NCBI RefSeq assembly: GCF_052425735.1
Contig: NW_027558036.1
Coordinates: 1,922,001 to 1,986,000, forward strand
Reading direction: 5' to 3'
DNA length: 64,000 nt
Origin: Oculina patagonica
Taxonomy: Eukaryota
In this document: one piece after another, positions 12,156 through 25,000 of the stretch
How the letters are laid out: every line of letters begins with the position of its first letter
Position numbering within the stretch: position 1 is the first letter of the stretch
Program-made: the position numbers and the translations under genes
Notes under the pieces: generated by a model
What the model saw: the letters and a program-made list of their open reading frames with translations, nothing else
What the model was told of the DNA's origin: nothing
Databases searched by the model: none

Positions 12156-12954
12156 CTAAACTGTGCTATTCATAATAAGTCCATAGTAAGGAAGATTATC
12201 GGTCTCCGCACCCCTATATACTTGTCCATTAATAATTAGCTTGTCAACTTTGAAAAAAAAAACTGACTGTTTCCCTTGTTTGGCTTTCTTTAGTACTGGG
12301 TACAGTTTCTGATGAATTGCATCAATCTCTTTGGGATAGTCGTGAGAAATTCCTATTCCGGTACCCTTCAATTTTTTAACCTTTGACATTACGTACTCTT
12401 TATCCTGATAGAAACTAAATTTGGCGATTATCGGCCTAGGCTTAGTACGTGTTTGCGAGTTTCGCCGAGTTGGTAGGCGATGCACCCGGTCAAAGCGAAT
12501 TTCATTCATATCTTCTCTTATTATTCCCAGTTTCTCTTCCATCATATTTCTCACTAAATCTTCAGTTTCTCGCGGTGTCTCACCTTCTGTTTCGTCGAGA
12601 TTAAATATCTTTACGCTTTCCCTTCTCGTATAGGCCTCTAGTTTGATGTTTCGGCACTTTATCTGCTCCATCTCCTTTCTAAGTTTTCGCACCTCTTCGC
12701 TGTCTTGTGCTTGTTGCGTGCATAAACTCGCCACGCTGGGTTTTAGTTCTTGTAGTTCTTTCTTCGTGTTTTCTGCCGCCTTCTTTAATTCTTTGTTTTC
12801 ATCTTCAATGGTTTTTAGACGATCCTTCAGAGTAGCAATTTCGGAAAACAAGTCCAGCAGTTTATCCATCTTGGCCTCCAAATTAGCCAGCCTTCCAGAA
12901 GCTTCGCACCAATGGTCGCCATCACACTCTTCATCCGTTTGAGAACCGGTAGAT
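12156..12954 (-). CDS. LINE ORF1 body (coiled coil + RRM + CTD, L1 ORF1/Transposase_22-like); N-terminus displaced to 21176-21246
   Basis: Coiled-coil region followed by EAYTRRESVKIFNL, RVHRL, PRPIIAKF, GIGISHDYP, DKLIING. Confidence 0.85.
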
Positions 12955-13031
12955 TTTGCCTTCACTACACAATCAAACACACAACACCGCTATAAGGCAT
13001 GGGCGCGTTGGTCAGCCAAGCCCAAGATAGA
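12953..13031 (-). repeat. Split direct repeat B2 (79 bp)
   Basis: Same sequence as 13431-13509. Confidence 0.95.
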
Positions 13032-13257
13032 CATTTATTGACACATCAATAAGATACAGGAGTCATAATTAGAAGATATAACTGTTAGCTTACATGCACC
13101 ACAGCCGGACACGTAAACCCTAAAAAACCCGCTACGGGAAAAAATAGGGACCGTGTACCCCCAACCAATGCTATGGCGCGACCTTTGGGGTTTTAAGGTT
13201 TACAACAATTTTGCAAAAGAAGCAAGGTAACAAATAAATAAACAGATGAAATAATCT

Positions 13258-13509
13258 AAACAACGTAGTGTGAAGCCGAGGAAGGCTGACCGTAGAATGT
13301 CACAACTTTCTCAACGGACACTTTTCAAACCGCCTAACCGTGAGGCCTCACGCACTACCCTCGCCCCAGTTTTCTGATACGTGTCGGCAAAATATTAATT
13401 TATGTTAATCAGGACCAACACAAATTACATATTTTGCCTTCACTACACAATCAAACACACAACACCGCTATAAGGCATGGGCGCGTTGGTCAGCCAAGCC
13501 CAAGATAGA
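13258..13509 (-). repeat. Internal B1-A2 junction of the split direct repeats
   Basis: 13258-13430 equals 21004-21176 (173 bp); 13431-13509 equals 12953-13031. Confidence 0.95.
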
Positions 13510-13531
13510 AAGTAAAAGAAAGGGCTTGAGC

Positions 13532-14535
13532 TCATAGAGATAATGATTTAGATACTTCAAGCCTACTGGCGAGAGAATCTTTAACATAAATGTTCTTTGC
13601 TGTGGCAGTAGCCCATCGACCATGGCGCTGAAGGTTCCTTTCTGAGACACCGGAACTAGCTGCCGAAGTAGCGCCCCCTGACCTAGTGGAATGCGTACTA
13701 AACTTAGAGATATCAGGCACAATGCTCGCAAAAGAGTTCTTAAAAGACTGTCTATAAGTTGAATAGCTGATAGGCTTATTTACAGAAATAAGACGCTTAC
13801 GATTACCAGAAGAGGAAATAGGTCTAAACAAATATTCGTCTGAATTATCAGCAATAAGAGCTTTCTGCATATACAATTTGAGCAAGGTGCAAGGACACGT
13901 ATCCGTACGCGTTTCTGCGATAACAACAGATCTCCCCTCTCTTAGTTGGTCAGTCTTGCTTTTCTCAATATTAATGGTCATGAAACCCTCACTAAAGAGA
14001 ACATCCTTGCTACGAATAACGCATAACTCAGAACTTCTAAGAAAACCAGAAAATGCAAGAATGAACATAACTAAATTTCTCAATTGCAAAAGATCTTCTA
14101 AGTTAAAATCTGCAACAAGAAGCTTTAGGTGGCTCACATCCAGGGGTTCCTTCCTGTTGGTTGAAGGCTGGCTAGCAAGGCGAAGAGCTCCTTCTTTAAC
14201 AGCGATAACAGTGGGGTGTGTAGTAGGCGAATCGACTCCGGCAAGGTGGTGAGCCCATCTAAAAGCATAGAACGCACAGTTAATGGCGGAGGCAGACTTG
14301 GACGACTCAAGAAGGTGCTGCAAATAAAGGGCACAGTCGATCGGTCTAACGGGAAAGTCCTTGGAGTCCAAGACTTCTCTGGCGAAAGCTCTCCATTTGT
14401 TGAAAGCCCTGAGGTAGACTTCGGATGTCCCGGCTGCTTTAGAAGCTAACACTGTTGATTTAAGGTTCTCTTTCAATAGGGACACAGTGGCAGTGTTCTG
14501 GGTCTCTGAAGACCAGAAACCGGAAACGAAGATAT
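13532..14535 (-). CDS. Tyrosine recombinase (YR) of the PAT-like element; probable terminal exon
   Basis: Catalytic residues FLRSSE (R), KSKTD (K), HSTRSGG (HxxR), RHGRW, NIYVKD (Y). Start placed at the splice acceptor TTTTTTTTCCATAG; no in-frame ATG before the catalytic domain. Confidence 0.88.
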
Positions 14536-14990
14536 CTATGGAAAAAAAACAAATGAGAGATACGAAATATGAGAGATAACGAAAAACAGCATATAAGGTC
14601 CGCCGGCGGAAATTTAATGTGGATTCAAACAAAAACAATATTCTCTCTAAGGAATATCGATATTCGAGGTCCGTACATATCCGCAAACATAAATACCCCT
14701 CAAGGGTGAAAACGCATAGAGAAAAAGGTACAAGCGAAAAATCAGTGCCCTACAGGCAAAAAACAACGTCAATAACATCAAACTCTCATAGCCCTCAAGG
14801 CATACCCCTCTAAGGTTTAAATACATGGTAAACAAAATACCCCTCTAGGGCAAAATAGCTGATAAGGAAGACACTACTACACAACTCGGAGCGAATAAAT
14901 AAGGCGCGTAAAAGAACGACTTAACAACTAGTATTCTAAGCATACATAACCCCTCCAGGGTATGAAGCCATAACAGGTACGAGCAGCAGC

Positions 14991-15347
14991 TCAAATACCA
15001 GGGACACGAAACGACTCGCGTGAAAAATCAGAATCTAGTCTGGGGACGATGCCAAAGTCAATACGCAGAGCTAATGAAACAAAAGGGATTGGCCTACTGC
15101 CAAAAATAGAGTTCTTGGCTTTTCCTCTAATGAACAAATTAGGAAAATTAGGCAGGATAACCCAGTCATGAATAAATGTACTCCAGTGTAAACCATCTGA
15201 ACACAGGATGGGCCAGAAGTGGGCTGATCTCCAAAGGGGAACAATTAGAGTTCCTTTTGCACTGCAAAGCTTCATGTGATTGATAACTTTACAAGTTAAA
15301 TAGACAGGAGGGCACAGCCAATTATTGTGATGAGACCAATCCTGAGA
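14991..15347 (-). CDS. pol C-terminal segment (methyltransferase-like domain)
   Basis: Reads SQDWSHHNNWLCPPVYL...GTLIVPLWRSAHFWP, continuous with GVNAF at 18547 once the insertion and one TSD copy are removed. Confidence 0.85.
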   Translation of the reverse strand, partial: SQDWSHHNNWLCPPVYLTCKVINHMKLCSAKGTLIVPLWRSAHFWPILCSDGLHWSTFIHDWVILPNFPNLFIRGKAKNSIFGSRPIPFVSLALRIDFGIVPRLDSDFSRESFRVPGI

Positions 15348-15876
15348 AAATGTGACCTTGCACGGGAAAACGTACTTTAACGCTTTTTCGTTTAACGACT
15401 TAAATCGTTAGTTAGTCGTTAGATTACCGTTAGGACGACTTAGAAAATCGTTAGAAGCGTTAGAATGGTCGTTAGAAAAATTTTCTTTGTCGTTAGAAGC
15501 GTCAGAAAAATCGTTAAAAAAGATCATGCACGTCGTTAGATGTATCAAGAAAATTCGTTCAAATCGTTAGTGAAAATCGTTAGAATCTCCGTACAAGTCG
15601 TTAGTTAAAATCGTTAGAATCTCCGTTTAAGTCGTTTGAAACGTTAGAAAATCAGTTAGAATTACCTTTCAAGTAATAATGTGAACGCTAAAGGAAGTAA
15701 TACTTGTTGGATTATCGCTCTGTTATCGTTTAAATCGTTATGTTAGTCCAATTGTTTTATAAACGCACCTGATGATCATCGGTGTATTCGACTCGTGTTT
15801 AGGAGAAATGCGAACACGAAGGCAAGCAAGCAAACAAAACAGTTTATCTATACCTTAACGAATTTTTAATAAAATT

Positions 15877-16188
15877 ATGCATACATTGAAACTCGACTGG
15901 ACTTCGTTCCTTAGTCAATTCTTTAAGAAGTTGCCAAACATCAAGAAGTATCATCACTTCCGTTTCTCCAAGGAAAACCCTGGAATGATCTACTTCAAGG
16001 AATTCGTGTCTTCTCCAGAACAATCGTTCCAGTTGTTAAAGAACAATGTTATTCTTCCGCCTGCTTCAACCCTTCCTCGCGAAATCAAACCCGATGGACT
16101 GACCGAGGAACGCAAGAACTATCTTTACCGCGAAATAAGGCAGTTTTGTAAACCAGGAACCGAGCACCTCGTAGCTCCAGCGCCATGA
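15877..16188 (+). pseudogene. C-terminal remnant of a putative Sola-type transposase
   Basis: DWTSFL..IKKYHHFRF..PG..GLTEERKNYLYREIRQFC..AP resembles the C-terminus of Sola-associated proteins as I recall them; no DDD core is present. Confidence 0.55.
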
Positions 16189-16258
16189 ATTTCCGAAACG
16201 GCTCTTTTAGAGTCAATGCGCCCTGCTTTCGTCGTTTTGGACGTTTGTAGGTCGCTTA

Positions 16259-16284
16259 AAACGGCTCTTTTAGGAGCCACCAAA
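16259..16284 (+). terminator. Histone-mRNA-like 3' stem-loop
   Basis: AAAC-GGCTCT-TTTA-GGAGCC-ACCAAA, with the stem starting 74 nt after the remnant's stop codon; degenerate copy at 16200-16214. Confidence 0.6.
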
Positions 16285-18546
16285 TCTATGAAAGTCATGA
16301 TCAACATTGAGTTATCTGAGTACTTTAATAATTGCGGAATAAAGTCTATTCTTTTTATTAAATTAAGAGCTGTAAACTGCGAGAACCTTCACCTCCATAT
16401 ACGCTCCACATGGTATCCGGTCGGATCATAAGCCTTCCTTAGATTAGCCCCAACCCAAAGTCGAGTAGTCCTCAACCCAAAGTTTATTTTCCCCAGTTTA
16501 AAAGACTCTTTAGACGCCGTACTTTTCAAAAATAATTTTCCTAAATTGACAAAAAGACGCCTCTTGATTCAGACGCCAAACTTTTTGGCCGTTCCTAATA
16601 CAGTTCCAAAAAAACCAGTCAAATTACATTATAATAATCTATGAATTAGATCGGCACATTAAAAGTACGGCGTCTGAATCAAAGGCGTACTAATTTAATT
16701 CAGACGCCGATCTTTTCATGCACAGTAAAAACCCGCGTGTAAGAACCTAGGGATTTAAGAATCTTCTGGCAGAAATTTGCTTTTTTAATACCCCAAAACA
16801 TAAGAACCTGTTTAGCCAAATAAATTCCAAAGTCATTGAAGTATGGAAAAGTTGCCGCCAGATTGGACCTTTAAAGTTAAGGTTTTATAGGTTTTGTGAT
16901 TGTTGTTTGACCAAAGGAAAATTTCCATGTAAGAAAACTGAACTTCGGTCAATATTATTTTATATAAATATATTTTTATCGAACGACTATTTGGACTAAG
17001 TCTCGTTTAATTATTTCAGTATTTAGGTTGCGCGCGCGAATGGCATCGTTTCATGTTTGCTTTAACCCATTTTTGTTTTTGTTTTACAAAATTCTGTCCT
17101 TAAGTCCGTCTGAATTCCGTCAATAATTATAAACACGCACCAGTTCTTGAATAAGCCTTCTTTGTCCATAAAATCACAAGTATAAACAATTGAAAAGTTT
17201 TAAGATAAAAAGGGAAAAAGATCACACGTTCCTTGCGCGGGCCACTAATGAACTGGTATTGTTAATAAGGCCAAACTGTAAACAACTAAGTTTTGAAATT
17301 TGTAGTAAACCTTGCCGCGAATGTGTGACATTCCAATAATTAAAAATATTTTTTGTTGGTCCATGTTCGCACGCGCGGGAAAGTCACAAGTTTCATTGAG
17401 TATAAACAATAGAGAAGTTGACAAATTCACATTTACCTCAGGCGGGCCACTGACAAACTGATATTGTAAAGGAAATCTTTACTACAGAAAGTTGCTCCTT
17501 GTTCCGTTCGCACGCGGCCAAAATTTAATTAATTTTGCGCGTGTGACGAAATAATCCAAAATTATGGTGCGTCACTAAGTGAAAGACACTAGTCTGCGCG
17601 CTGTTATTTATTAAGAATTTGCTTATATAAGAAGTTTTAAAAGCGCATTAAAGAAATTTTTATCAATAAAGAACTGAGAGAAAAACTTGTTATTTTAATC
17701 TTAACAGCGAACATCTTACACTTAAATTACTTTTTTTCTCTTCGGTCGATGAAGAGAGTGGATATAGCGGGACCTGGGGCCAAGCAATCGGTTGCTATGA
17801 CAATGTTAAACCGGTTGTGTCCTGGGCACAAAGTTGCTTCGCTCATCCTTAGACGTTGCCCAAACGTTTTTGCCGAAATAATTTTACACTTAAAGACTTT
17901 TTAACGCTAAAGTTAAGGAGAAAAACACTAAAGAAACTTCCTCGCACTGCTCATTTTAATCTGATGTGGTCGAAGAGTCGAAAATATGCGACAGTTATTT
18001 TACATCTGCAGCGAATTCTGCTTTCGATGTCCGAAAGCACTGTTTTATACCATTATAAACACTGAACTTTCGGTAAGTAATAAAGATTTTATCATTTGGA
18101 AATGATTTGGCGTCCTTCTAATAAGCTAGACTAGTTCTTAGACTAGCTGTGTATCACTTCTCGTTCAATTTCTTGCTCAAAGCACATGTTTCAGTCGTAA
18201 TGTCTTCTCGATCTCGGCGCGAAATGATAACTTATGATTTTAAGCTTACTTGGCAAAGTAAGTCCGCTCGTTTATGTTTATGTCGTTAGCCAATTCGTTA
18301 GTCCGCTCGTTTATGTTTATGTCGTTAGCCAATTCGTTAGTCCGCTCGTTAGAGTCGTTTGAAAAAGTCGTTAGGCACTTCGTTAGAATGTTCTCGCAAG
18401 TCGTTAGATATTTTTGCTTGAGCGTTCAACTCGTTAATAAAGTCGTTAGAGCGTTATGAAAAGTCGTTAGTTACTCGTTAGTTAGACGTTAGTTTTTGCC
18501 CGTTTAACGAAATATCGTTAAAGTACGTTTTCCCGTGCAAGGTCAC

Positions 18547-20277
18547 AAATGCGTTGACCCCACTGGAACCAGGCTGATAGAATCTGGAATTGAACAAGGG
18601 GATCTTGGCGTTGTAAGAACAAGCAAACCTATCGCAGGAATGTGGGCCCCATAACTCGTCAAGGGCATGGAAGACTTCATCATTGATAGTGTAATCATCG
18701 TAGTCGATAAATTTACTGACATCATCAGCCGCACTATTAAGGTCTCTTGGGATCCATTGAACATCAATGTTAATGGCATTAAGCAAACAACTTTGATAAA
18801 TATCCATGGCAAGATCCTGCAACAAATGAACTTTGGAACCAGAGTTAACAATCCGAACGACGTTCTGGTTGTCAGTAAACCAGGTGACTGTCTGTGCTTT
18901 CAAAGATTCGTTAAACGCCTTCAAGGACAAAGAAACAGCTAACAACTCTCTGTACGTAGAACTCTGAGCTTTCTCGAAATCCGACCAGTTTTGATGGAAG
19001 ATCTTGCCCTCGAAGTCAATAAAACTAGCACAAGCAGAGCCAGAGGCATCCGAATAGACAATCTTGGAAGGTTTACTGCTAACAGGCCACATAGGAATCC
19101 CATTTAAGCTTGCCACATTGGATGACCAGAAATTGAGCTCAGCCAAGGCGTCTGAAGAGAGGTATACGGAAGCATTCCAAGACGGCGCAGAGTTGATGAC
19201 AGCAAACAGATTCCTGGACATAAGTCTGGAGACATTGCCGACGCAGTTGCCAAGAGAAATAATCTTCCCGCAAACACTAGCAAGCTTACGAACTGGAAGA
19301 CAAATTGAAGAAGTAGCCAAAAGAGACGACAAATCTTGTTGTAAAGAAGTAACACGCTTCTCAGTAGCAGAAATTTCAGACGTTGCCGTGTTTAAAACGG
19401 TCCCGAGCCACGTAATAATCTGCGTTGGCTCCCAAACACATTTAGCTTCGTTAGGGAGAAAGCCAGATTTAAACAAATCAGCATGAACTTGTAAACTTGC
19501 AATTTTCGCTTTGCTCTCGTCAGCAGCAGCCCCGAGGCCATCATCCAAAAACACAATAATCGCTTTCGACTCTGACCTCCATTTCTTGACTAAAGGCTTA
19601 AGCAACTTGGTAAACAGAAAGGGAGCAGAACTGAGACCGAACGGTAAAACAGTAAACTCAAAATATCTTGTGCATCCTGAAGAAAAAGTCCAAGCAAAAG
19701 ATAGAAATTGCCTGTGTTCGGGAAAAATCTCGACGTGATGATACCCTGATTTAAGGTCAAAAGAAAACATGAAATCGCCTGGATTCAGCACTTCTTTCGC
19801 GACAGTCAAATCTTCACACCTGAACTTGATTTTGTAAAGAAACTGGTTAACGTGACGAAGATCTAAAATAAGCCGTTTTTTGCCTGATTTTTGAATGGAA
19901 ACAGACAAAGGATTGATAATCACAGGTGCTTGAAATACTTCAGCGACACAACCTTGCGAGATAAGCTCATTAATAGCGGATTCAACAAAAGGTGATTCAT
20001 CCAAAGCCGAAGAATTGTTCTTAGCCACAAAGGGCGTCGGAATTTGTAAAAGTGGTAGCTTGTAACCAAACTCAATCACGTCCAGAATAAATTTAGGTGC
20101 GCGGATGTCCTTCCAGAAATTTAAAGCTCTACGGAGTCTTCCCTTGACAGATACGCAATCAACACCAGATTTCAGCAAACAGGACGCTCCATTAACGCGA
20201 AGAAAAATCAGATCATCAAAAGTTGAGTTCTCCTCTTCAAGCACAAGGTCCAAATCCAGTTCGGAATCCGAAATTAG
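18547..20277 (-). CDS. pol: pol (RT + RNase H + start of MT-like domain), interrupted at 18546
   Basis: KKRLILDLR, FDLKSGYHHV, LPFGLSSAP, FLDDG (RT); YSDAS, SSTYREL, TDNQN, WIPRDLNSAAD (RNase H); DRFA (MT-like). Frame is open from immediately after the gag TGA. Confidence 0.92.
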
Positions 20278-20973
20278 TCACTTAGATTGTTGAGCGGCCT
20301 TCGAGGTGCTGGCAAACTGTAGGGTAGGGCAACAAGCCCTCCAATGACCCGGTTGACCGCAAGCAAAACATACACCAGAGCTAGATCTCTGGGACAAACT
20401 CTGAGGACGCACACGCGAAAATAAATTAGGCAACTGTGAGGCGGAAAGTTGCGGTGTCGCAGCGGTGACAGGCGTTACAAATCTTCTTTGCTGAGCTGAG
20501 CGAGAAGCGAACCGCTTGGTAGATCTAGCTGCTCTAGACTCTGCCCTGTAGATCTTTTTCTCGTCCTCTTCATCGTCCGCAAGATCATGATGCTTGTACT
20601 CAACCACAGTTTTCCAACCGTAAGGCGATTTGTCTGCCAACAAAATTAACTTCTGGCGTTCCTTCAATAAGTCCATACCTTTGTCGAGCGCCTCCTTGGT
20701 CTTTTGCAAATCTTTGTTATCAAGGGCAGTCTGCGCGTCCTCGACGGCATCCTTAATAGCCTTGTTAGCGTTGAATTGTTCCTCGTTACTCTTTTTATTG
20801 AAATGATGGACGGGATCCCGCTTCAACCTTTTGATTTCCGACATTTGGTGCGATGCAATGGTCTCATTAGAACGCTTGAGATCCGATATAGAGGATTTAA
20901 CAAGATCCTGAATCTGAACGAGAAGACCTTGATTGTTATCCGCGATGACTTTTCGAACGCTCTCTTCATCCAT
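20278..20973 (-). CDS. gag: gag-like protein with CCHC zinc knuckle
   Basis: ATG at 20973 (MDEESVRK); RQKLILLADKSPYGWKTVVEY motif of DIRS-group gag; CFACGQPGHWRACC. Confidence 0.88.
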   Translation of the reverse strand: MDEESVRKVIADNNQGLLVQIQDLVKSSISDLKRSNETIASHQMSEIKRLKRDPVHHFNKKSNEEQFNANKAIKDAVEDAQTALDNKDLQKTKEALDKGMDLLKERQKLILLADKSPYGWKTVVEYKHHDLADDEEDEKKIYRAESRAARSTKRFASRSAQQRRFVTPVTAATPQLSASQLPNLFSRVRPQSLSQRSSSGVCFACGQPGHWRACCPTLQFASTSKAAQQSK

Positions 20974-21003
20974 AACGGGAAAAATAGGGAAAAGGACAAA
21001 TAC

Positions 21004-21176
21004 AAACAACGTAGTGTGAAGCCGAGGAAGGCTGACCGTAGAATGTCACAACTTTCTCAACGGACACTTTTCAAACCGCCTAACCGTGAGGCCTCACGCA
21101 CTACCCTCGCCCCAGTTTTCTGATACGTGTCGGCAAAATATTAATTTATGTTAATCAGGACCAACACAAATTACAT
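21004..21176 (-). repeat. Split direct repeat A1 (173 bp), 5' end of the PAT-like element
   Basis: Same sequence as 13258-13430. Confidence 0.95.
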
Positions 21177-21246
21177 TTTGTCGCAGTCGCTTGCGTGAGG
21201 TAGTCTTCGAATCGGTTGGGACCTCTTCCGTTTCAAGTTTTTCCAT
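21176..21246 (-). CDS. N-terminus of LINE ORF1 (MEKLETEEVPTDSKTTSRKRLRQ)
   Basis: ATG at 21246, ~110 nt from the LINE 5' end; can be joined in frame to KSTGSQ at 12954. Confidence 0.7.
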
Positions 21247-21516
21247 TTTTTGCAGACAGAGCGCTGATTAAATTGAGATTCACATACTTTTTTAAAGATT
21301 TCTTCAGGAGAGATCAAATACACGTCTGTCTTCTACCTGTGCTACCGCGCCTTCCCCACTAGTTTCGATATCGGTCCGTGTAAAATTTTACCGGCCAACA
21401 GTTGTCGAAGCTTCTTTTGAAAACAAAAACTTTAACTCTGTTTCCCTGCAGATCTACGGTCCCTTTCTGCTTGCAACACAGAAACAAGAATAATTACTAG
21501 ACTGTAAACTCGTTAA

Positions 21517-22094
21517 CCCTATTCAGACCGGGCTTTTTTGGACCTTCTCAGACCGGGGGGGGGCTTCGGAAGCCCCCCCTATCTAACTTCCAGAATATTT
21601 AAGCAATCACAATGAAACTTATAGGATGTATTGTATGTCCGAAAATCTTTCTTTTGGTATATGTCACGTGATATGGTGACGTCACATCACGTGACAATTA
21701 CATCATGATGTCAAAACAGCCGCCATCTTGGATCCGCCATCTTGGATTTCAAAATTCTTCCAAAATGCCCGAAAACCACCCAAAATTATTGCAAAGTACT
21801 CAAAATCAATAAAAATGTGCTTTAAACCCGTAAAAATGTAAAAATAATTCCATTTAAGTTGATTTTTATTGACAGAAACACGCAAAATTACAAATTTGGG
21901 AAAACATGCCTGTCAAAATGACGTTGCCATGGTGATGTCAAGTTCATGACACATCATCCAACCCTACCAAATTGTTGCCAGATAAATTTTAGGAAAACTC
22001 AGAAAGTTTGGGAGCGTTTGATGTAATCTTAAAAAAGTTATAAAAGTTCAAAGTCAGCGCGGGCCTCAAAAGCCCCCCCCCGGTCTGAATAGGG
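21517..22094. mobile_element. piggyBac-type MITE
   Basis: TIR CCCTATTCAGACCGGG ... CCCGGTCTGAATAGGG with TTAA on both sides; second copy at 46021-46590, partial copy at ~27025-27232. Confidence 0.88.
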
Positions 22095-25000
22095 TTAAGA
22101 ATTCCTTAATCTCGAAAATTTGGAAGGAAAGCGGTCTATTTCCCCGTTTAACAAACAAAAACTTCAGAACTCGCGTAATTTTCACTCTATTCCCCTTGTA
22201 ACACGAAAGTTGTTTATCCTAAAACGCCTCGTTTTCATGTCTCGTACCAGTTTTTTTCCGCGCGTCCGCCATTTGTGAAATCGGTGTATCGGGGACGAGA
22301 ATGTTCTCGCCTCGCCCCGCCTCGTCCCCATTTTTCGCGCGGTCATTCATTTTTTGGCTTCAAGCTCGACGGACTCTGCGAAAAAATAGGGACAGCTCGT
22401 AGTCTAACCGCACGTGGTAAGCAATTCCAAAGGGTGATAGCGCTATATCGTGCGTTGTCCAGAGGCCGATTTATAACCTGGGATATTGAAACTGTTCTTC
22501 TTTCTCGTGTTACGGTCATGCACAACAGAACGTGTTACAAACTGATCACACAAATAATTGGGCGCTAGTCCCTTGACACATTTAAACGCAAGAATGCCTA
22601 CCGTATACGTCAAATAATTAACTACTCATGTTATATGGTCGCACGGCATGCTTTGCAAGCGTTTGTTTTTACTTTGCTTCTGTCGCTAAAGGAAGGCGTT
22701 TGAAAATCGAAAATATTTGGGGCATTTGGTGGTCTAAAAAAATAATATTTACTGGAAGTAAAAAAACACAAGATTAACATATATTTTTTGACAAACATGA
22801 TCGTAACGTTATGTCGCGCACCGCCATAATTCTGAAATTAAAAATGCGCTGGTTTCCGAACGAAGGGCGCTATTGAGTTGAAGTTTCGAACAGACATAAT
22901 TTTAATACCTCTTATGCCTGGTGCGGATAAACACGTTAGGGACTCCTTAGTTTTGTATATTATATAGTATATTATACTATTAGTACGCAAAAACGATCTA
23001 TTGAATGAATTTCACGCCGTATGTTATGAACGACAATTCAGTCCAAAAGTAACCATTTTAAACTCTGCCATGCAATACTTCAGAATTGACGAGATAGATC
23101 AAAGTTTTTTTTTTCTGAGGAAAGCATCTGCTGGCTGAGGTGAATTTAATCTTTCATTGTTCTTTTAGCCAATAACAAGCCATAAACCAGACATGAACGA
23201 GGGTCTGAAGGGGGTTTAGTGTTTAGTGTTATTCGGCACATAATTTTTTAGTGTTTGCTGTTAAATTGGCCAATTTTTTAATGCTTACTAGTACTGTTTC
23301 GGGAGAAAATGCCGTTAAGTATTTAGAGGGTATTTCGTAAAAAATCCATAGTCTTTACACTGCAAACATATATCTTTCGCATGTAAATATAACGACGACA
23401 ATATGGTGGAAATTTTTCGTATTTTTCCTCGGAAATATTCGGTAGTCTTCGGACATCTTTTGTAGTCTTCGGAAATATTCGGTAGTCTTCTGGAATCTTT
23501 GGTAGTCTTCGGTAATCTTCCAAAATGATCGGGAATCGTCGGAAAATGACCGAATACTTCCATGAGCGTCATTGCTGATCCAGATCTAAACAAGGACGTC
23601 AACCCGAATACAATTTGCTGTTGTTTTTGTGACTGGCCCTTGCCCGCCTAAATATTATATATAAAGGCTTAAACATTCCCCAGACATGAAACATTTTACG
23701 CTTTTTGAACCTTTCCTTATATTTCGCGCCTCTTGCCCGCGCTCAGTACCAGTGCAATAATGAACACAAAGGAAGAACCAGTTCTCTCGTTTTTACCGAA
23801 GTACTGAAATTTTGTTTCTGTGAGATTGAAGGTGAGAAATTACGAGTCAGAAACAAATGCTTAAAACCGGTAGACAAGCGCGCGGTGAATTTTGCAATAA
23901 ATGTCGGCATTCTTTCGATTCTTAAAAGCGTTTAGCATTATCTTAGTAACTGTTAAAGTTCAAATTGTTCGTCTCAGTGAAGTCTATTATATAATTGTGA
24001 AGTTGGTATTTTTGGAAAATAAAAGTTTAAGGAGCGAAATTTATTTCCCTTTCGTGTGTAAAAGTGGAGAAAAACGAAAGACTAGAAACAGATCTTGGAG
24101 ATTAAAATTAAAACCTGCGAGCTAGTCAATACTTTAAATTTGAATAATTAGATCATGAATAAAGTCACTCTGACAAATTAAACATTTCCACCTTTAATAC
24201 ATATTTTCTTATATTTGCGAAATAAACATTCAAACAATATCTTTAGCCTGGTATAATGTTACAAAAACATTGCCCCTATCACTGTTTTAAACTGAAACCG
24301 AATACAACTCAGCAATAACCAACTTCGTCAATGTATGATTTGTCAATCCCTTATGGAAATGTGCCAGCGCATCCTACAGAAATGTTAATGTTCTCAGAGA
24401 ATTAGAAAAGCAAAAACACAAAGGATTCGCGTTCCCTAGCTTATATGAAAAGTCAGCGGCATGGCAAAAGTTTCGGATTCTTCAGATCTTCATCACTGTG
24501 ATAAAAATACCTACACGCGTATTAAATAAGTCAGTGTTTAGTATAATAGCAGTTTTGAGGGAGTATTGGGGCTTGCCGTGTTGCCATTTTTTTTTATGCG
24601 GTGTTACGGTGAATAAAACCCCATCTCGCGGTGTTGCGGTGATCTCAAACCCTTGTGTTTTTAAACCGACTGTGTTTGGTGAAACGAAATTATTAGCGGT
24701 GTTACGGAACTAAATTCGTAGCACATACACATATTTATATTATTATTGTTATCCTCTTAATGGAGCGCGGAGTATGTTAAAAAAGCGCGTCCGCTACGGG
24801 GACTTTATTTTTACCGTAATACTCCAAAATGTTTAGACGACGTTTTTCTACGGACGAAAAATATTCAAACACTCTTTTTGTCCGACAGTTTTATCATCCG
24901 AACATTTATTCATCCTCATCGCTAATAAAGCGCCTGCTTTGCACGCACTCTAAGGTAACCGTACAGCTGCCACTGGCAAATAGAAAGTCTTTTTCTCTGT

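Follow-up and report, generated by a model that had tools for sequence, protein, structure and literature searches.

A tyrosine-recombinase retrotransposon of the scleractinian coral Oculina patagonica probably makes its Gag-Pol protein by programmed readthrough of a UGA stop that lies in frame, a reading to which a probability of roughly 0.78 can be given for the element and its family. The element lies on the minus strand, from 21179 to 12953 (about 8.2 kb as it stands), of a stretch of 64,000 nucleotides (nt) on contig NW_027558036.1 (positions 1,922,001 to 1,986,000, assembly GCF_052425735.1), hereafter the window, to which all positions below refer. The conservation of UGA-C, the in-frame anatomy of gag and pol, the coding constraint past the stop and the scarcity of nearby AUG codons are the observations from which we infer readthrough itself and its rate.

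In the proposed mechanism Pol, which comprises reverse transcriptase (RT), ribonuclease H (RNase H) and a methyltransferase (MT)-like domain and lacks its own start codon, would be made as a Gag-Pol fusion by the fraction of ribosomes that read the UGA at the end of gag as sense. The signal would consist of the stop and the nucleotides next to it (UGA-C, in most cases UGA-CUA(G)), and no RNA structure downstream would be part of it. The majority of ribosomes would stop and release Gag and a minority would continue to give Gag-Pol, so that the leakiness of the stop would set the Gag:Pol ratio, as in gammaretroviruses.

At the junction the minus strand reads AAG TGA CTA ATT TCG GAT TCC GAA CTG GAT TTG GAC, with gag and pol in one frame and a single TGA at 20280-20278 between them, as a preliminary description made from the letters of this DNA had stated. 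The same description let the frame run on through RT, RNase H and the MT-like domain. This holds for RT and RNase H; for the MT-like domain it does not, as the gag frame stays open for 599 codons past the TGA and ends at 18478, inside a 3.2-kb insert. The first in-frame ATG after the stop is codon 170 (19770-19768), within RT, where the first methionine of pol had been noted.

The arrangement recurs in the genome of O. patagonica. The junction-bearing family copies C11 (98% identity) and C12 (84%) both carry TGA CTAG; a copy on contig C6 is 100% identical and shares its flanking DNA with the window copy, and is therefore the same locus assembled twice and not an independent copy. A survey of this genome, in which the contigs were searched with the pol protein and each upstream junction was read, recovered gag with a CCHC motif, an in-frame TGA and pol in L012 (TGA CTAGCC) and L013 (TGA CTAAAG). 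It also recovered a second DIRS-type family outside the pol clade of the window (L017, L019, L021, L024, L033 and L047-L053), in which an in-frame CCHC-gag is followed by TGA CTAGAT and pol; the TGA is present in six of seven copies, and pol has 673 open codons. The in-frame TGA CTAG of this L017 family has either arisen convergently or goes back to an earlier origin of this layout.

A wider survey took in loci from seven ENA assemblies and 80 metagenome contigs of coral type. The TGA is followed by CTA or CTAG in L040-42, L046, L062-67, L069-79, L088-89, L097, L125 and L138, by CTC in L038, L039 and L082, by CTG in L045, by CCC or CCT in L061, L066, L091 and L132-135, and by CAA in L084-87; CTA was found in 17 junction types and CTAG in at least 11. 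The alignment of relatives thus bears out an in-frame TGA-C and not the strict TGA-CTA that the preliminary description had in mind, and, as contexts other than CUA occur, the claim rests on UGA-C and not on the canonical hexamer.

In a tree built with FastTree from a query-anchored pol alignment, the window element belongs to a clade of 25 lineages (support 0.98) that sums to 5.7 amino-acid substitutions per site and leaves L017 outside. TGA-C is found in 24 of these lineages and TGG in the remaining one. The TGA-C lineages reach down to about 47% pol identity, and past the stop many keep intact open reading frames (ORFs) 670-720 codons long. When 11 lineages are aligned on the stop, TGA-CT alone does not vary, and the sequence flanking it is scrambled. 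Among the 28 lineages outside the clade gag is mostly in another frame and usually overlaps pol, the exceptions being the L017 family, an ambiguous Amphiura copy and two lineages, L119 and L103, whose gag stop shares the phase of pol but precedes the pol match by 171 or 492 nt. The stops of these 28 lineages are 14 TGA, 9 TAA and 5 TAG, with TGA-C in only three, one of which is the in-frame L017 family. The difference in TGA-C inside and outside the clade gives p of about 1e-10 by Fisher's exact test, a value that is illustrative and uncorrected for shared ancestry. The overlap of ORFs in different frames, named beforehand as usual for the DIRS group, is thus the layout of the more distant families in this genome.

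This depth of conservation bears on whether a random or inactivating mutation could have produced the stop in a dead copy, with a coincidental context. The window copy is indeed dead, and CpG decay can turn CGA into TGA, with one old copy of the L017 family showing CGA at this position. Against this, the same TGA-C is shared by 24 lineages that come from several assemblies and metagenomes and reach about 47% pol identity, many of them with long intact ORFs behind it, and it stands in C11 and C12 as well, which makes the explanation highly improbable and sets aside a mutation private to the window copy. Nor has the frame or context been lost among relatives: the frame is kept, and TGA and the C that follows are invariant where synonymous sites are saturated.

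The codons past the stop behave as coding sequence. Over the first 45 codons after the TGA, comparisons among the window, L038 and L039 give ratios of nonsynonymous to synonymous substitution rates (dN/dS) of 0.12-0.29, with dS about 1 or saturated, where the gag tail has 0.08-0.14 and RT has 0.07; the group of L013, L045 and L037 gives 0.47-0.62 for the same 45 codons. Across the post-stop comparisons dS ranges from 0.7 to 1.3. The post-stop codons are under purifying selection, which means that they are translated in frame with gag, by ribosomes coming through or around the stop. Most lineages are without an in-frame ATG for 168-268 codons past the stop.

A natural fusion is found in L037 (ENA ERZ25067889 ctg48613), a lineage nested in the clade, where TGG CTC replaces the TGA and yields an uninterrupted Gag-Pol of 963 amino acids. 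Several intact ORFs of this form exist, in the three protein clusters P0053, P0056 and P0057; a Gag-Pol fusion protein therefore appears viable. TGG, the codon for tryptophan, is a single step from TGA, and tryptophan is commonly inserted at UGA during readthrough.

Pol could alternatively be translated independently just past the gag stop, through reinitiation, initiation at a non-AUG codon or internal initiation. CUG and UUG codons are present within 10 codons of the stop, and in L017 and L046 an in-frame AUG follows 20 or 61 codons behind it. This scenario is nevertheless quite improbable, given the long AUG-free stretch in most lineages, purifying selection that acts from the first post-stop codon and the fused TGG lineage, which shows Pol working as a Gag fusion. 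Reinitiation after an ORF of 230 codons is moreover inefficient in eukaryotes.

A further way around the stop is splicing from a donor within gag to an acceptor within pol, which would remove the UGA and make it an ordinary Gag terminator. The NCBI model of the window copy (O. patagonica ACROYT_G021206, P0001) does join gag to pol in this manner by a GT-AG-bounded in-frame intron of 231 nt, from 20373 to 20143 on the minus strand, which drops the zinc knuckle together with the TGA, and in sister lineages an intron is indeed present near the junction. The donor GT of the model is, however, the valine codon of a G-V-C stretch ahead of the knuckle, and this GT is missing in L039, L011, L041, L042, L045 and L046, while the intron of the sister lineages begins downstream of the stop and leaves it in place. 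Splicing would also constrain neither the identity of the stop nor the next C, yet both are invariant. The single joint found in read contigs, from 20400 to 19674 (a 725-nt skip), exists as DNA in a deletion derivative of the element on contig C9 (L005) and is therefore no splice. The N-termini of the database protein matches did not separate spliced from unspliced forms. Splicing as the route to pol, which the preliminary description had listed as a possible refutation, is thus unlikely, and the 231-nt intron is probably an annotation artefact, the route of the predictor around the stop.

The deletion derivative L005 (G000 C9:18377396-18380476) is a non-autonomous member of the family of the window element. 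It joins the equivalents of window positions 21176-20400 to 19676-18864 and then to 13671-13173, and the first of these junctions also occurs in contigs from public runs.

RNA structure does not appear to contribute to the signal. The hairpin proposed in the preliminary description, starting 5 nt after the stop, is present as an inverted repeat (TTCGG-ATT-CCGAA) but is neither stable nor conserved: the 111-nt junction region folds no better than shuffled sequences (z = 0.02), and the hairpin is missing from every lineage examined beyond the near-identical family of the window itself. The hairpin consequently has no supported role in readthrough. Decoding of the UGA as selenocysteine can also be considered, as an in-frame UGA has been linked to recoding in another retroelement class, reportedly Penelope-like elements. 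It is extremely improbable here: no selenocysteine insertion sequence (SECIS) or other relevant Rfam family matched in 12800-21400, which spans the whole element, at E up to 1, the stop sits in a poorly conserved linker, and a relative has tryptophan at the stop position.

Several points weigh against programmed readthrough or limit what the data say on it. As the lineages share ancestry, they do not count as independent events. The nucleotides after TGA vary, with CTC, CTG, CCC, CCT and CAA next to CTA, and the AUG codons close behind the stop in L017 and L046 could offer a start in these two cases. The copy with CGA in place of TGA is the oldest of the L017 family (C7, 88% identical). No sequencing run recorded as RNA contains the stretch, and read depth is zero over 20047-20319 in four runs (two to three contig sets marked 'RNA?' and one poly(A) run of raw reads), a result that bears on neither expression, splicing nor readthrough. 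Finally, the open-access literature makes no connection between readthrough and elements of the DIRS, PAT or Ngaro kind, a search outside of which lie the primary DIRS and PAT descriptions in subscription journals. Set beside these points, the conserved frame, the TGA-C and the constraint past the stop still argue for programmed readthrough to Gag-Pol, as the preliminary description had proposed.

The conserved intron of the sister lineages would add a second layer to the junction. Six lineages have a T-rich segment in which every frame is closed by stops (L011 with L062-64 and L086, L040/41, L042, L065 and L067; the L011 locus is G000 C9:3924329-3928150). It starts 7-9 codons past the TGA at AAG/GTGTAGT (CAG/GTGTATT in L067; the slash marks the intron boundary), is 76-218 nt long, ends in a pyrimidine tract and YAG, and lies in phase 1; its excision restores the pol frame. 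After excision, L041 has a linker of 42 residues from the stop to an S-V-K/R-G-R-L motif, the same as in the intron-less window. Since the linker has 42 residues with and without the intron, intron removal appears to have been precise. The donor-like sequence GGTGTAGT is retained as coding G-V-V in the intron-less L012, L013 and L045, and is diverged to GGTGTTGT in L037. The intron-bearing lineages form a grade, inside which an intron-less group (window, L038, L039, L061, L066, L091 and L132; support 0.999) is nested. The simplest history suggested by these sequences is one precise intron loss in the lineage of the window, as from reverse-transcribed spliced RNA.

The intron-bearing lineages would need both splicing and readthrough for Gag-Pol. 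It is possible, though the proposal is a tentative one, that Gag-Pol was gated twice. With an ancestral intron 7-9 codons past the leaky UGA, only spliced RNA could yield Gag-Pol, by readthrough, whereas intron-retaining RNA would encode Gag alone and supply the template from which new genomic copies are made. A retrotransposed spliced mRNA would then have founded the lineage of the window, leaving readthrough as the sole gate. If true, the spliced and the unspliced RNA of a tyrosine-recombinase retrotransposon would divide their tasks much as in retroviruses.

Intron-like GT...AG segments also lie within a few codons of the gag end in two related elements of deuterostomes, each known from a single copy: L044 of the brittle star Amphiura filiformis (CM076859.1), where gag ends in TAA, and L043 of the amphioxus Branchiostoma (CM033049.1), where it ends in TGA-CAC. 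The gag and pol frames did not join across the segments in these single copies.

The anatomy of the window copy identifies it as a PAT-type tyrosine-recombinase retrotransposon with split direct repeats (Table 1). The repeats follow the order A1 ... B1-A2-B2, the split direct repeats of the PAT-like type; B1 and B2 are 100% identical, and about 200 nt separate A2 from B2. The layout of such repeats in PAT-like and Ngaro elements has been described (PMC3266345). A tyrosine recombinase is present and a DDE integrase match absent, as in the DIRS order, and a Pfam search of pol gave no match to rve or to a protease.

The gag frame (21009..20278) counts 243 codons from an upstream TTG at 21009, with the ATG at 20973; its knuckle scores 19.9 bits against Pfam zf-CCHC, just under the cut-off, with the motif C-x2-C-x4-H-x4-C present. 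In pol, Pfam places RT at codons 164-293 (RVT_1, 19788-19399, E = 1.2e-13) and RNase H at codons 421-522 (RVT_3, 19017-18712, E = 2.4e-5). A Dam domain behind RNase H distinguishes DIRS and PAT elements from Ngaro; for the MT-like domain, Dam (PF05869) reaches only E = 0.0036 on the intact relative P0002, short of the cut-off, and precomputed PF05869 matches exist on the relatives P0031, P0092, P0098 and P0113. Because a transposon of 3.2 kb with terminal inverted repeats interrupts this domain, no full Pol is possible and the window copy is dead. The best database match is an O. patagonica hypothetical protein that shares the terminal residues derived from the insertion.

Table 1. Features of the retrotransposon and its insertion in the window.
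Feature	Position	Strand	Remarks
5' direct repeat A1	20982..21179	-	198 nt; 94% identical to A2; repeat search
gag ORF from ATG	20281..20973	-	231 codons; CCHC zinc knuckle near C-terminus
gag/pol in-frame TGA, proposed leaky stop	20278..20280	-	
CTA, 3' context codon of the TGA	20275..20277	-	first C invariant across the clade; CTA/CTAG the majority state
TTCGG-ATT-CCGAA inverted repeat	20260..20272	-	begins 5 nt past the stop
pol frame up to the insertion	18548..20277	-	42-codon linker, RT, RNase H, N-terminal part of MT-like domain
Foreign 3.2-kb element in MT-like domain	15351..18547		47-nt terminal inverted repeats, 94% complementary; repeat search; strand not assigned
C-terminal remainder of MT-like domain, end of pol	14991..15350	-	ORF 15275..14991 colinear with C-terminus of intact relative P0002
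Tyrosine recombinase ORF	13532..14686	-	Pfam Phage_integrase, E = 1.8e-12
3' repeat block	12953..13509	-	B1 13509-13431, A2 13433-13236, B2 13031-12953

Other features lie in or next to the element. The 3.2-kb insert contains an Rfam match to the histone 3' stem-loop at 16258-16302 on the plus strand (34.2 bits, gathering score 34). Directly 3' of B2, an ORF of 274 amino acids with weak Pfam coiled-coil matches (12156-12980, minus strand) possibly belongs to another mobile element. In the flank, a repeat of about 590 nt at approximately 21513-22100 has at least 40 genome copies with 93-99% identity, and a degenerate tandem array with a period of 10 nt (TCTTCGG-like units) at 23426-23552 is overlapped by short minus-strand ORFs.

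With respect to significance, Pol expression in DIRS-order elements is essentially unstudied, and reviews speak of overlapping ORFs without settling on a mechanism. If true, readthrough-based expression of Gag-Pol would extend from retroviruses to tyrosine-recombinase elements, and the invariant in-frame UGA-C in a deep coral clade provides a concrete hypothesis that can be tested with reporters. The natural series of 3' contexts (CUAG, CUA-N, CUC, CUG, CCC, CCU and CAA) in one homologous background could inform on the minimal leaky stop of eukaryotes. Gene predictors mishandle such loci: the NCBI model adds a probably false intron, and prokaryote-style callers begin pol at GTG or TTG. The mechanism and the motif are already known; new, as far as can be told, are their employment in this class of elements, how deeply the arrangement is conserved and the intron next to it.

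Among known systems, alphaviruses use a UGA-C(UA) leaky stop. The UGA-CUAG motif, named in the preliminary description as a leaky context, is a published readthrough-favouring context of animal genes (bioRxiv 10.1101/2021.04.18.440353), with which the coral element shares the stop, in most lineages the nucleotides +4 to +7, and the independence from long-range structure. It differs in that the coral motif is located at a retrotransposon gag-pol boundary and that in several lineages the nucleotides behind the stop have changed to CUC, CUG, CCC, CCU or CAA, with UGA-C retained.

In murine leukaemia virus (MuLV), a gammaretrovirus, synthesis of Gag-Pol by in-frame stop-codon readthrough is established (PMC5009743), and the coral element resembles it in having gag and pol in one frame with a single stop between them, a pol without its own start and a ratio that would be set by leaky termination. 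MuLV uses UAG and an essential downstream pseudoknot, whereas the coral element has UGA with no supported structure and would depend on the adjacent nucleotides only; the 100 nt downstream of its stop fold no better than shuffled sequences (z = 0.02) and are not conserved in sequence. The coral element furthermore integrates by a tyrosine recombinase and is without protease or DDE integrase.

As in recoded long terminal repeat (LTR) retrotransposons, translational recoding would set the Gag:Pol ratio (PMC5009743), but frameshifting by -1 or +1 is what the majority of them rely on, and the element class and the integration enzyme differ. With DIRS1-like, PAT-like and Ngaro elements the coral element has gag, RT/RNase H, a putative MT-like domain and the tyrosine recombinase in common, and with PAT-like and Ngaro elements also the split direct repeats; unlike the DIRS-order elements described in the accessible literature, which stresses overlapping ORFs in different frames with no in-frame leaky stop, it keeps gag and pol in a single frame across a UGA-C.

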